Source: Octopus sinensis (taxonomy: Eukaryota). From it: DNA of 64,000 nucleotides. Location of the stretch: assembly GCF_006345805.1 (NCBI RefSeq), contig NC_043001.1, forward strand, positions 84,196,001-84,260,000, read 5' to 3'. Below, piece by piece: positions 13,640 to 21,588 of this stretch; position 1 is the stretch's first letter; every line of letters begins with the position of its first letter. Below the pieces are notes generated by a model. That model was not told the origin of the DNA, did no database searches, and saw only the letters and a program-made list of their open reading frames with translations. The translations under genes were made by a program, and so were the position numbers.

Positions 13640-13816
13640 CCTACTGGTGTATGATAGACCGTAATCTAACCGACTGTATGCCATGCAACCACGGCGAATA
13701 TCAACCGGATCCAGGAGCTGACAATCAATTCTATCAATGTACCAATGGACTTATGTATCTCCTAATGTGCCCACCAGGAACTATTTGGGACCAAAGAGTA
13801 TGGAAATGTGGTGACA
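13640..13816 (+). CDS. Exon D: CBM14/peritrophin-A-like domain 1
   Basis: ttatttcag|...A|gtaagt, 177 nt, phase 1-1. PYWCMIDRNLTDCMPCNHGEYQPDPGADNQFYQCTNGLMYLLMCPPGTIWDQRVWKCGD: FYxC-x9-CPxGTxW-x6-C motif. Confidence 0.9.
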
Positions 13817-13872
13817 GTAAGTATTGGACATTCCACAATTTTCTTACTGTATGACCTTTAAAGTAGACACCT

Positions 13873-14100
13873 ATTTCTTTACTACCCACAAGGGGCTAAA
13901 CACAGAGGGGACAAACAAGGACAGACAAACGGATTAAGTCGATTATCGACCCCAGTGCGTAACTGGTACTTAATTTATCGACCCCGAAAGGATGAAAGGC
14001 AAAGTCAACCTCGGGGGAATTTGAACTCAGAACGTAACGGCAGGCGAAATACGGCTACGCATTTCGCCCGGCGTGCTAACGTTTCTGCCAGCACGCCGCC
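13873..14100 (-). mobile_element. Young SINE family B copy with a perfect 15-bp TSD
   Basis: TSD TTAAAGTAGACACCT at 13858-13872 and 14101-14115. Confidence 0.92.
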
Positions 14101-14542
14101 TTAAAGTAGACACCTGCCATAACGTCACCTACTCCTTGCGTAAATTTAAGCGGAGTTCACTTTATGGTAAGCGCATACTGCAGATATGGACCTAAGGATT
14201 TATTCAGGTCGGATATCGATTATATAGATCTAACAAGTTTAGATCGGTATTGAAAGATCATGAATACTGACTCTCTACCTCCAACTAATAAAAATCATTT
14301 AGAAAATCGATGGGACAGTCATGTTTGAAATACTTTTATTCATAGGTCAGCTAAATAGGGGATGATCTACCAGATGATCAGATGAGGACTATCAACGATT
14401 TGTCCTCATCTGTCTGACATACTGGTATGCTTTCGGGGTAGAGGTGGATGTTTCGGGGCGAGAGTATCGAAGTGCTGAGTGCTGGCCAAACCATTATCAC
14501 TATTTTTCATTTGTTCTCTTGGCAATCTGGTTATACTTAGAT

Positions 14543-15030
14543 CTACTACTACTACTACTACTACTACTACTACTACTACTACTACTTCTACTACTACTAC
14601 CACTACTACTACTACTACTACTACTACCACCACCACTACTACTACTACTACACACACAGACACATACACACATACATGAACACTCAGACACACACAGGAG
14701 CATGCACACACACACATGAACGCACACATGCACACACAGATGTACACATGCACACACAGACGCACACACGCACACACAGACGCACACATGCACTCTATAC
14801 ACACTCAAATGGGTACACATATACAACGCTCTCTCACTCACTCACACACACATACACACACGCACACATGAACACACACACATACACACATACCAACACA
14901 CACACATGAACACACACATACACACAGAGACACATTTACACACACAAATGGACACATATATACAACGCTCTTTCTCTCGCTCTCACTCTCTCTCTCTCTC
15001 TCTCTCTCTCACACACACACACACAAACAG
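14543..15030. repeat. (ACT)n and (CA)n-rich compound low-complexity tract
   Basis: Read directly from the sequence. Confidence 0.9.
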
Positions 15031-15382
15031 GTACAAGCAAACACGCATATTTTAATTGCTAAGCTAATTAAAACGTGAACAATAGTAATTTGAATAAACC
15101 CTTCGCAGTAAATACATATCGTCATCAGGGTTACCACTACTCTCCGAAAACAAGTATGAAGAACAAGGACATAATTTCTTTTTCTTAGAATTATTTATAA
15201 TAGGAGCGTCACTCGATAGACGAGTGACGCCCCAATATCAGCTTGATATGAATAAGTCATAAATTTAAGTTCCTGTGTGTATACTGTATGCTGTATACAT
15301 TTGAGCCAGCGAGGAAGGATGCACGAGGTCACGTAGCCTGCAAGAAACAGCATTGAAGTCTCTTTCAAATCGACCTTCTTAA

Positions 15383-15898
15383 CCCTTCGTGGGCCGGCGG
15401 GGTTGGAATTACACAAGAGGCCATTGGGGTCTCGAGGCCCCCCCCCTTTTATTTCTGCACACTTCCGCACTATCCATAAAGAATGGGAATGAAAGGAGGG
15501 GAATTAAGATATGATTTATTGACTGGATAAAACCTTTAGTGAAAGAAATCAACGTTTTTTATAGTTTTGTAAACGATATATATGGCACAAAATATAAAAT
15601 AAAACAGTACAAATACGAAGAAAATTGACTTATAGTTCATCAGAATATCTGAAAAAAAAAGAACAAGAAAAAATAATTTCACAGAAAGCCAATGGTGTCC
15701 AGTTGGACCCCAATGAGCATATTTTATGCTATGATATCCATATGACTGGAAATGTTTAACTTAAAATTTGTATATGCATACATAAACTATTGACAATAAA
15801 AGTCATGAGATATAAAATTATTTAAGTAAAAATTGTAAAAGTTGCATAACTTTTAAAATTTGCTGGGGTTCCAAGGGATCCCGCCGACCCACGAAGGG
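15383..15898. mobile_element. piggyBac-type MITE, 516 bp
   Basis: TTAA on both sides (15379-82, 15899-902). TIRs CCCTTCGTGGG(C/T)CGGCGGG match at 18/19. No coding remnant seen. Confidence 0.88.
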
Positions 15899-15919
15899 TT
15901 AAAAGAGGAATACCCTATG

Positions 15920-16290
15920 ATTGTCAAATAAGACGGTATGGTCATCATCGGAATGCCTTAAATCACAAGTTTCAGGACTGACCTGGCATTAAACAACAAC
16001 AATTATATATTGTTTGAAAAGGTGATGACTGGATGGTCGCGGATAAGATGTCTTTGATCATAGATCTGTTCCATTTGAGCTACCTTAGCCGAAACAACAA
16101 CAATAAGACAGGCTAGTCATTGATGAGGTACCCTTGACCGCATGTTCCTTCCTTTAAACTAAATTTAGGCGAAACAACAGCAACAAGAATGTACTGTGTT
16201 TGAAAAAGTCAGGACAGATGGTATGCCTTTGATCATTGGGCTGTTGCATCTGGGCTAAACTTAGGCGAATGAAACAACGACAATAATCTA
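15920..16290 (+). repeat. Four degenerate 80-100 bp units, each ending in an (AAC)n tail
   Basis: AAACAAC tails at 15991, 16091, 16171 and 16271; shared GCCTTTGATCAT and TGTTTGAAAA motifs. Confidence 0.6.
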
Positions 16291-18900: not shown

Positions 18901-19202
18901 GTAAGTCCATACTTCCATATTCTTTCGTAAATTTCATTTCAATATATCAATGTCATCTCTTCTTTCTGAAAACAGGTTTTACAGTTGTCAATTGTTGATA
19001 ACCTAGAAGCATACAAACAATAGTGTCACTATTTCGAACCCCTTTCTGATGCCACGTTAAGGCTCACTAAAATTAATAGTATGAAGACGAGTGGTGTGTT
19101 CAGTTGAGGAAATTTTCGCCACATCAGATATCATACAAAATATAAAAACTACTCAGTTATAGTATTCTTGCATTATTTGCTAGTTCCAGGTTTCTTATTT
19201 CT

Positions 19203-19799
19203 TATTTCTTTATTGCCCACAAGGGGCTAAACACAGAGGGGACAAAGAAGGACAGACAAACGGATTAAGTCGATTAGATCTACCCCAGTGCGTAACTGAT
19301 ACTTAATTTATCGACCCCGAAAGGATTAAAGGCAAAGTCGACCTCGGCGGAATTTAAACTCTGAACGTAGCGGCAGACGAAATACTTATTTCTTTACTGC
19401 CCACAAGGAGCTACACACAGAGAGGACAAACAAGGACAGACAAACGGATTAAGTCGATTATATCAACCCCAGTGCGTAACTGGTACTTAATTTATCGACC
19501 CCGAAAGGATGAAAGGCAAAGTCGACCTCGGCGGAATTTGAACTCAGAACGTAGCGGCAGGCGAAATACCTATTTCTTTACTACCCACAAGGGGCTGAAC
19601 ACAGAGGACAAACAAGGACAGACAAACGGATTAAGTCGATTATATGGACCCCAGTGCGTAACTGGTACTTATTTAATCGACCCCGTAAGGATGAAAGGCA
19701 AAGTCGACCTCGGCGGAATTTGAACTCAGAACGTAGCGGCAGACGAAATACTGCTAAGCATTTCGCCCGGCGTGCTAACGATTCAGCCAGCTCGCCGCT
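19203..19799 (-). mobile_element. Head-to-tail trimer of SINE family B (period about 184 bp)
   Basis: Units at 19203-19385, 19386-19569 and 19570-19799; only the last has the 5' head. Confidence 0.9.
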
Positions 19800-20014
19800 T
19801 TTTGTTGGTTCAGGTTTCTAGCGTGACTATATTACTACACAAAAATTGACGTTTTACCGTAAATTGGTTTCCTACTTCTTGGTATGATCTTATCTATTCG
19901 TAACGCGAATTAAATTCTGTCACTGACTTTCAAGTTAAATGGAGGTAAATGAACTTCGAAATCAATAGGAAAATATGTTTTGCCTAAAGGAACTCTTCCT
20001 TACGGCAAGATTTT

Positions 20015-20300
20015 CGTGAACGCTTCTATGTATGTATGTATGTACGTATGTATGTATGTATGTATGTATGTATGTATGTAGTATGTATGTACGTATGTAT
20101 GTATGTATGTATTTATGTATTTATGTATACATGTATGTATGTATGTATGTATGTATGTATGTATGTATGCATGTATATATGTATGCATGTATGTATGTAT
20201 TTATGTATACATGTATGTATGTTGTATGTATGTATGTATGTATGTATGTATGTATGTATGTATGTATCTATGTATGTAATGAGTATGTGTATGTATGTGT
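20015..20300. repeat. (ATGT)n microsatellite
   Basis: Read directly from the sequence. Confidence 0.95.
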
Positions 20301-20809
20301 GTACGTATATATGCGTATGTGGTTCTGCGTGCATCTGTAAATGAGCATGTGCATATGTATATATATCTATGTAAAATATGAATGTATTTTACGTATATTA
20401 TATGCATGGTATATGCCAGATTCTAAACTATACGTCTATACCACTATCTCAAGAAGATTTTTATTTCTCATGTTTGATCTTTCTCTATTTCAGTATTACC
20501 AGCTCCAGCGCAATTTAGGCCAGTATCACGTGAGTAATATATTTAGTATCACCGAATTATAAATACATAACTTGAGTAGGTAGATTTTCCATCTTATCAC
20601 TAGAATTGTTGTTGTTGTTGTTATCTTCGTTGTGGCTGCTCTTTTCGCCACATTTCAAAGCCTGCTTTGCTTCATACTTGAGTTCCGAACTCTGAAATGA
20701 GTCACAGAAGTGCGTTGTGGCATGCGACTTGCCTACAGTATATAAACCTTAGTGTTTAAAAGTTTTCCTTTTAATTTTTCATTTATTGGATCTAAAGGAA
20801 GAAACCGCG

Positions 20810-21070
20810 CTCATGCCCTTGTACACCGTCTTAACCCAGTGAGATTGATGCCGTTTAATATTGGTCTCAAATTTTGGTGTAAGGCCAGCATTTTCGGGTT
20901 AAGGAATAAATCGATAACATTTACCTCAGTGGTCAATTGGTACTTATTTTATCGATCCCGAAATGATGAAAGGTAAAAATGTCTCCCACCAGCATTTGAA
21001 CTGGGAGCGTAAAGAAATGTCAGTAAGCGTCTTTCCTGGGTCAGTAACAATTCTGCCTGCTCGCCGCCTT
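20810..21070 (-). mobile_element. Diverged SINE family B copy
   Basis: Degenerate match to the family B head and central domain. Confidence 0.7.
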
Positions 21071-21400
21071 ATTGACACCATGAATATTACTGTCGCAATT
21101 TTATAATTCAACACTTGCAGGAGAAACAAAAAAAAAAAAAAAAAAGGAAGAGAATTCGAGAGGGTAGATATTTTGAGAAGGAAGGAGGTTCAAGTGTATA
21201 TGTGACTTTACGCAAATTAATTGGGTCTTCCTAGCAGTAGTGTCTGAAAAAGTACTATATCTATATTCTATTGTGGGCCTTATTTAAGCTTTAATAAAGT
21301 TTATTCGCAAAAGAACTTAACATTTTATGTGCTGATAGTGTAAAATAAGGTTAGTCCTAATAAGAATTTTATTAATATAATTTCCCCTCTCTTTAAACAG

Positions 21401-21588
21401 TGACAGAGATGTGTTTCTATCCAAATATGACGAAATGTTATCAGTGTGAGCCAGGATTCTACGAGGACGACGACAGTTGCCGACGTTTCTACACATGTGC
21501 CAACGGAGGCCTGGTCTCTATGTCGTGTCCAGATGGTACCCGCTGGAACCAGACTCAAACTCGTTGTGACAACGGTGTTATGTGCTGA
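21401..21588 (+). CDS. Exon G (terminal): CBM14-like domain 3 and stop
   Basis: ttcccctctctttaaacag|, phase 1. VTEMCFYPNMTKCYQCEPGFYEDDDSCRRFYTCANGGLVSMSCPDGTRWNQTQTRCDNGVMC*; TGA at 21586-21588. Confidence 0.92.

Follow-up and report, generated by a model that had tools for sequence, protein, structure and literature searches.

An N-terminally extended form of the CBM14 domain in an EGF-containing gene of Octopus sinensis

We analyzed a stretch of 64,000 nucleotides from Octopus sinensis (NCBI RefSeq assembly GCF_006345805.1, contig NC_043001.1, positions 84,196,001 to 84,260,000 of the forward strand), hereafter called the window and numbered from its first letter. Positions 13640-21588 of the forward strand are the 3' part of a multi-exon Octopus gene that continues upstream into exons for calcium-binding EGF repeats. 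Three of its exons, which we call D1, D2 and D3, encode one CBM14 domain each, and in all three the domain is preceded by an extension of 12-13 residues that is bounded by two extra N-terminal cysteines, Ca and Cb, with Cb lying three residues ahead of the first canonical cysteine, C1. The best explanation of these data as a whole is probably a gene for a secreted EGF-CBM14 matrix protein whose CBM14 modules carry a hairpin extension closed by Ca and Cb. The CBM14 fold, the coupled loss of the cysteines C2 and C6, and lineage-specific extra cysteines are already known. No earlier account seems to exist of the extension, of the sequon conserved in it or of its deployment in two linked octopod genes, and the literature, so far as searched, does not describe the extended variant.

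The interval, as delimited by the first-pass annotation of this DNA, runs from the first base of the D1 exon to the last base of the stop codon, and holds five exons, all in phase 1-1 and bounded by AG and GT. The domain exons D1 (13640..13816), D2 (18721..18900) and D3 (21401..21588) are separated by two linker exons, one at 16357..16419 (I-MKIELEMLNGTEPVNMTLVN) with two N-glycosylation sequons, and one at 20494..20529 (V-LPAPAQFRPVS). The first linker is also present in the O. bimaculoides protein A0A0L8GFF3 and has no separate match in the orthologous Argonauta locus, while the joins around the second recur both in A0A0L8GFF3 and in the deposited Argonauta product GAB1598776.1. The D3 exon ends in the stop codon TGA (21586-21588), and about 200 nt past it an AATAAA at 21791..21796, read from the sequence, is the probable polyadenylation signal. 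Upstream on the same strand, calcium-binding EGF exons, supported by tblastn with A0A0L8GFF3, lie at 5184..5306 (DINECEHQNGGC...MKTCE), 6884..7006 and 10185..10307. Each is 123 nt long, and their sequences DINEC, DVNEC and DVDEC agree with the D-x-[ND]-E-C start of calcium-binding EGF domains. The third splices directly and in frame to D1 (C|CC, giving Pro), and the resulting junction, ...STCW-P-YWCMID, is the same in A0A0L8GFF3, whose EGF part matches the Pfam families EGF_CA (PF07645, 42.9 bits) and FXa_inhibition (65 bits) above threshold. The same AG/GT boundaries and 1-1 phase thus hold for all eight exons, three for EGF, three for CBM14 and two for linkers.

The spliced product is 97.3% identical (293/301) to UniRef100_A0A0L8GFF3 of O. 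bimaculoides, with the same exon joins. That entry bears the UniProt label Chitin-binding type-2 domain-containing protein and starts at a Met within the first EGF exon, and is therefore itself a partial model. A profile search also retrieved the Argonauta hians product GAB1598776.1, of 104 residues, with the same D2-linker-D3 joins. The locus from which it comes (BAAFZT010000005.1, 23895314-23918082) is syntenic and contains at least five calcium-binding EGF exons followed by D1, D2 and D3, with 20 of 20 domain cysteines and all three loop sequons kept. In the Argonauta annotation this orthologue is split into a 1376-residue model, which runs off the locus, and a 104-residue fragment, with the D2 exon cut between them. 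Because the 1376-residue model extends upstream, the 5' end of the Octopus gene must lie beyond the start of the window. The ratio of nonsynonymous to synonymous substitution rates (dN/dS) between the two species is 0.085 for D1 (88% identical), 0.098 for D2 (75% identical) and 0.039 for D3; the three domain exons pooled give 0.08, at a dS of about 1.4 that is near saturation. The CBM14-EGF gene is functional and under strong purifying selection. Word-indexed protein searches found no match for the spliced product of 214 residues, only the Argonauta fragment for an alignment of 22 domains, and only itself for a related protein from the data set SRR12008146, so that this index evidently misses these proteins.

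Each domain matches the Pfam CBM_14 profile (PF01607) above its gathering score of 22.1 bits: D1 at 30.9 bits (3.1e-7), D2 at 38.4 bits (1.4e-9) and D3 at 42.9 bits (5.4e-11), or 88.2 bits jointly (E = 3.9e-25). When a profile of the three domains was compared with PDB sequences, the best match was Der p 23 (6.8e-7), together with a chitinase CBM14 (8.1e-7), and further matches were Der f 23, EHEP, chitotriosidase and Avr4. AlphaFold2 models of D1 and D3, built with an alignment of octopod paralogous domains, had predicted local distance difference test (pLDDT) scores of 88 and 82, and both showed a five-strand pattern. In Foldseek searches of the PDB the top 12 matches of D1 and the top 11 of D3 were all CBM14, at probabilities of 0.97-1.0 and root-mean-square deviations (rmsd) of about 1.1-2.8 A over 42-49 columns, the top structures being CHIT1, Der p 23, EHEP, Blo t 12, Avr4, Der f 23 and tachycitin; D1 was matched best by the chitin-binding domain of CHIT1, Der p 23 and EHEP. 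About 15 N-terminal residues, corresponding to the extension, were unmatched in these comparisons, although they were modelled at pLDDT 68-86. D1-D3 all retain the aromatic F-Y ahead of C3, as well as the invariant Trp that lies between C4 and C5. By sequence profile and predicted fold, D1-D3 are CBM14 domains, and the assignment made in the first-pass annotation is upheld by two of the checks it had proposed, the PF01607 profile and structure prediction.

The translated exons give the cysteine register directly. D1 reads C-x8-C-x2-C-x17-C-x9-C-x12-C, D2 reads C-x7-C-x2-C-x17-C-x9-C-x12-C, and D3 reads C-x7-C-x2-C-x10-C-x5-C-x9-C-x12-C-x5-C followed at once by the stop. All three domains therefore have, as had been read from the DNA, two additional cysteines before C1 and the spacing C3-x9-C4-x12-C5, and the translations likewise agree that C2 and C6 are absent from D1 and D2 and both present in D3. 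At the C2 position D1 and D2 have D and P, and they have no cysteine past C5 in the exon or in the next linker exon. The six-cysteine CBM14 register C1 to C6 is found in D3, which has eight cysteines with Ca and Cb, and not in D1 or D2, which have only C1, C3, C4 and C5 of that set. The two-disulfide CBM14 type, with just those four, fits the cores of D1 and D2 but not the full domains, each of which carries two cysteines more. A six-frame pattern scan of the window found the extended pattern nowhere beyond D1, D2 and D3.

To place the extension among other CBM14 proteins, we read the best 150 of the 1,836 proteins that an exhaustive hidden Markov model search matched at E < 1e-3; these 150 contain about 1,200 CBM14 cores. 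Among these best 150 hits, 18 of the roughly 1,200 domains had the x8/x2/x17 signature, and they occurred in two octopod proteins only. The uncharacterised O. sinensis protein XP_036358737.1 (LOC118763360) contains 11 extended copies, and the A. hians hypothetical protein GAB1598772.1 (Ahia01_000154400), a partial model, contains seven. All 18 share the single spacing C-x8-C-x2-C-x17-C-x9-C-x12-C that is seen in D1, and in both proteins the copies are spaced by Gly/Ser-rich low-complexity stretches. D1 is therefore an exact instance of the octopod extended module, Ca-x8-Cb-x2-C1-x17-C3-x9-C4-x12-C5, D2 is one loop residue off, and D3 is an eight-cysteine relative. The Ahia01_000154400 locus (BAAFZT010000005.1, 23733330-23777492) is on the opposite strand, about 120 kb from the Argonauta orthologue of the window gene, a proximity that suggests a local cluster of genes with the extended module. 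A related form of the extension occurs in the SRR12008146 protein (P0067), which has six D3-like domains in tandem. These are encoded in one exon at 1131-2102 of the Logan contig, which also contains, at 178-663, a Gly/Ser-rich open reading frame (ORF) starting C-x8-C-x2-C. Among the same best 150 hits, an insect addition of the form C-x-C-x8-C1 was found in 62 domains of six proteins, and therefore additions at this end of the fold are not unusual in themselves. Judging from the sequences of the hits listed, the C-x7/8-C-x2-C1 form appears to be confined to cephalopod-type proteins.

The first-pass annotation had given the canonical disulfides of CBM14 as C1-C3, C2-C6 and C4-C5, and this is the pairing described for the EHEP crystal structure (10.1101/2023.06.04.543649). 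In 25 of 25 aligned domains C2 and C6 were together present or together absent, a co-occurrence consistent with the canonical connectivity. Both were present in the window D3, the Argonauta D3 and the six domains of the SRR12008146 protein, and neither was present in D1, in D2 or in the 15 extended domains, out of 18, that represented LOC118763360 and Ahia01_000154400; the other three, near-duplicates omitted from this alignment, lack both as well. When aligned to the window profile, chain 4zce of Der p 23 shows no canonical cysteines other than C1, C3, C4 and C5, and its bonds C1-C3 and C4-C5 are in the conserved positions (PMC4844120). Solved members such as Der p 23 have neither C2 nor C6, and therefore the family does not strictly require both; C2-less cores of several unrelated types were also found in the best 150 of the 1,836 hits.

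With the canonical core pairs assigned, Ca and Cb are the sole leftover cysteines in the three window domains and in the 18 paralogous copies. Given that core, the cysteine counts are even only if Ca pairs with Cb, which supports this pairing. In both AlphaFold2 models, DSSP assigned isolated beta-bridges at Ca-1, Ca+1 and Cb+1, a pattern that suits a short hairpin in which the two cysteines lie opposite each other. A further hint comes from the SRR12008146 protein, where Ca occurs only at a domain whose Cb does not have to act as a C6. On this indirect evidence, a Ca-Cb disulfide that closes a short hairpin is the most likely arrangement.

Every Ca-Cb loop in the window contains an N-x-T sequon (NLT at 13663-13671, NFT at 18741-18749 and NMT at 21424-21432), and with the others at 16387-16395, 16405-16413 and 21547-21555 there are six in the CBM14 part overall. 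The three Argonauta loops all keep theirs, as NLT, NYT and NLT, and N-x-T is present in 4 of the 11 loops of LOC118763360. Because the loop sequon is conserved, the Ca-Cb loop is probably glycosylated. The calcium-binding EGF repeats, the CBM14 modules, the phase 1-1 exon modules and the many sequons argue for a secreted matrix protein. We postulate that the product would be a secreted, N-glycosylated matrix protein with a run of calcium-binding EGF domains followed by three CBM14 modules, one to each phase 1-1 exon. Each CBM14 module would be a small beta-sandwich held by C1-C3 and C4-C5, with the C2-C6 pair kept in D3 and lost from D1 and D2, and the extension would form a short hairpin closed by Ca-Cb, bearing an N-glycan at N-x-T and packed against the domain's N-terminal face. 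The second, linked octopod family, represented by LOC118763360 and Ahia01_000154400, is built from this module with identical cysteine spacing. The protein would likely bind chitin or a ligand associated with it, and so attach it to the EGF-rich matrix of a chitinous tissue.

Several points weigh against this proposal or narrow it. Because the window does not reach the signal peptide and the 5' exons, secretion is read from the domain types only. The subtype is not peculiar to the window gene, as the 18 copies of the same spacing in two octopod proteins demonstrate, and public databases already list the gene's product and its paralogues, though only under automatic or uncharacterised names. 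Hits were ranked by summed score and the best 150 of 1,836 were read, so that carriers of single extended domains in other taxa may have been missed. The cysteines are invariant across the octopod copies, and covariation therefore cannot discriminate between pairings there. Nor is the joint absence of C2 and C6 a novelty, since the Der p 23 sequence (4zce) already shows it. The earlier argument that this paired loss fits a real fold under selection is supported by the 25/25 co-occurrence and the pooled dN/dS, but the phenomenon was already known. The related claim of an undescribed CBM14 subtype stands for the extension itself, so far as the literature was searched, and is weakened by the known case of coupled loss, by the occurrence of the subtype in other genes and by the UniProt entry for the product. 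D1-D3 also lack an aromatic side chain at the second position past C5, reading G-D, I-H and D-N in place of the usual D-W or x-Y; CHIT1 has its conserved Trp465 at that position (PMC4844120). Finally, EHEP and Der p 23 have the CBM14 fold, reportedly without chitin binding (10.1101/2023.06.04.543649).

The last two points bear on ligand choice. Chitin binding is the default expectation for a CBM14 domain, and from the sequences we consider the chances that the window domains bind it to be about evenly balanced. An alternative that is possible, though we would not favor it, is that they have the CBM14 fold without chitin binding and recognise another ligand (a polyphenol, a protein or another glycan), as for Aplysia EHEP and Der p 23. 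The post-C5 residues of D1-D3 and these two precedents (10.1101/2023.06.04.543649) speak for it, while the retention of the invariant Trp between C4 and C5 and of the aromatic F-Y before C3, the presence of several chitinous tissues in octopods, and the aromatic residue that the LOC118763360 domains keep two positions after C5 speak for chitin.

A second alternative, about as tentative, concerns only the origin of the extension and is compatible with a Ca-Cb bond. The extension could be a relic of tandem arrays, in which the C6 of one domain, 2-3 residues before the next C1, became Cb when the domains were separated onto phase 1-1 exons, with Ca recruited or retained from the preceding C5-C6 tail. 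The tandem domains of the SRR12008146 protein are joined as C5-x3-11-C-x2-C1, with a single cysteine between C5 and the next C1, which must therefore act as the C6 of the upstream domain; the one domain with Ca is the first of the array, which follows no other. Insect arrays of the form C5-x7-C6-x3-C1 (17 domains in P0002, P0021 and P0041, among the best 150 of 1,836 hits) provide a similar junction, and the unusually short C1-x10-C2 is common to D3 and the SRR12008146-protein domains. However, the Ca-Cb loop has no detectable sequence similarity to a C5-C6 tail, and the direction of evolution is unreadable from three lineages. Somewhat more speculative still is the idea that the glycan-site hairpin is a cephalopod-specific module that arose from a C6-x2-C1 junction and was exon-shuffled into at least two linked matrix genes, altering recognition at the CBM14 face. 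If so, the ligand of the extended face might be a partner protein or the beta-chitin found in the hard parts of cephalopods.

It is unlikely, in our view, that the disulfide map is non-canonical, either with Cb serving as C1 and bonded to C3 while Ca bonds to the third cysteine, or with C-x2-C acting as a redox or metal motif. In its favor, the local matches of D1 and D3 to the Pfam profile begin only at its positions 6 and 4, from which position 1 extrapolates to Cb, and in D3 the Cb-x13-C2 spacing is nearer the usual C1-C2 distance than is the x10 from the third cysteine, the latter being shorter than the x15 of EHEP. Full-length Pfam matches in the LOC118763360 and SRR12008146 proteins nevertheless put profile position 1 on the third cysteine, in line with the first-pass annotation, the PDB alignments with chitinase and Der p 23 also put C1 there, and the SRR12008146 protein needs Cb as the C6 of the preceding domain. 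The canonical core with a Ca-Cb hairpin is thus the pairing that we prefer. Far less probable is a hybrid in which a fragment of an Ephrin_rec_like or GCC2-GCC3-type repeat (C-x2-C-x2-G-x-Y) supplies the N-terminal half, and CBM14 the C-terminal half only. Such a hybrid would fit a SCUBE-like EGF context, with calcium-binding EGF exons directly upstream, and Pfam gave Ephrin_rec_like at E = 0.005 on D1 residues 7-35 and DUF4215 at E = 0.013 on D3. These scores, 16.9 bits for Ephrin_rec_like (PF07699; D1 only) and 16.2 bits for DUF4215, are below the gathering scores of 23.1 and 27, and we rejected the hybrid on that account; moreover, CBM14 domains normally have a G-x-Y after C1, as the alignment with the chitinase shows, and no structures of the hybrid type were among the Foldseek matches with probability >0.35. 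That the domains are a chance ORF or a decaying pseudogene, for which only the repeat-rich and transposon-rich surroundings would speak, has next to no probability and was rejected, given dN/dS of 0.08 at saturated dS, intact splice sites and orthologues in three octopod genera.

The window as a whole is eukaryotic DNA with microsatellites, repeats resembling short interspersed elements (SINE-like) and transposon ORFs. On the reverse strand at 1566-2627 is an apparently intact mariner/Mos1-type transposase ORF of 354 residues (Pfam Transposase_1, 1.7e-24, and HTH_48), and a decayed mariner copy in two frames (17252-17988, reverse strand) lies in the intron between the 16357-16419 linker and the D2 exon. 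Downstream of the gene there are retroelement ORFs of 611 residues with RVT_1 (27639-29471, forward strand), of 446 residues with no Pfam match and a Cys-rich tail at its end (33493-34830, reverse), and of 222 residues with zf-RVT (46448-47113, reverse). A (TATC)n microsatellite at 18610-18705 reaches to about 15 nt from the D2 exon acceptor, and long (TAC)n and (ATGT)n arrays, at 14545-14650 and 20030-20290, occupy neighbouring introns. The SINE-like repeat (…GGGGCTAAACACAGAGGGGACAAACAAGGACAGACAAACGGATTAAGTCGATT…) recurs at about 13400-13520, 13860-14110, 19200-19800, 20900-21080 and 22200-22650, with three tandem copies in the intron between D2 and its linker.

CBM14 is the main chitin-binding module of animals, and the classification of peritrophins and cuticle proteins relies on its disulfide framework. 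A conserved variant with an added, cysteine-bounded and probably glycosylated hairpin shows elaboration of this module in molluscs, and a single gene here holds copies with and without the C2-C6 bond. The finding marks uncharacterised octopod matrix genes as candidates for roles in chitinous tissues such as the beak, radula, sucker lining, gut cuticle and stylets. This may be relevant to biomaterials research, and changes no general principle.

Compared with known systems, the predicted beta-sandwich is like that of the CBM14, peritrophin-A or ChtBD2 domains of chitotriosidase (5hbf, 6so0), tachycitin (1dqc) and Avr4 (6bn0, 4z4a), with an rmsd of 1.1-1.3 A over 44-45 columns to 5hbf. Like canonical CBM14, the window domains have the C3-x9-C4-x12-C5 core, an aromatic pair ahead of C3 and a Trp within the C4-C5 interval; they differ from it in the extension before C1, which lies beyond the Pfam model, in the loss of C2 and C6 from D1 and D2, in the short C1-x10-C2 of D3, and in the residue two positions after C5. 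Der p 23 and Der f 23 (4zce, 5zjl) have the two-disulfide core of D1 and D2, and Der p 23 is the best PDB sequence match (6.8e-7) and among the best by fold; however, these allergens have no N-terminal cysteine pair and consist of one small domain each, which is not embedded in a large EGF-containing protein. EHEP of Aplysia kurodai (8in3, 8in6), matched by Foldseek at probability 1.0, is likewise a mollusc protein with three linker-joined CBM14 modules, but these are canonical six-cysteine modules (C-x15-C-x5-C-x9-C-x12-C-x5-9-C) with neither extension nor EGF domains, and EHEP binds phlorotannin, not chitin. The insect CBM14 arrays (P0008, P0017, P0019, P0023) also show recurrent, lineage-specific cysteines ahead of C1, with a different spacing (x1 and x8, versus x7/8 and x2 in the octopod module) and with C2 and C6 kept. 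Closest are LOC118763360 and Ahia01_000154400, in which the same module, 25-41% identical to D1 and often with N-x-T in the loop, is repeated in 11 and 7 copies; unlike the window gene, they have no EGF modules and no eight-cysteine copy.

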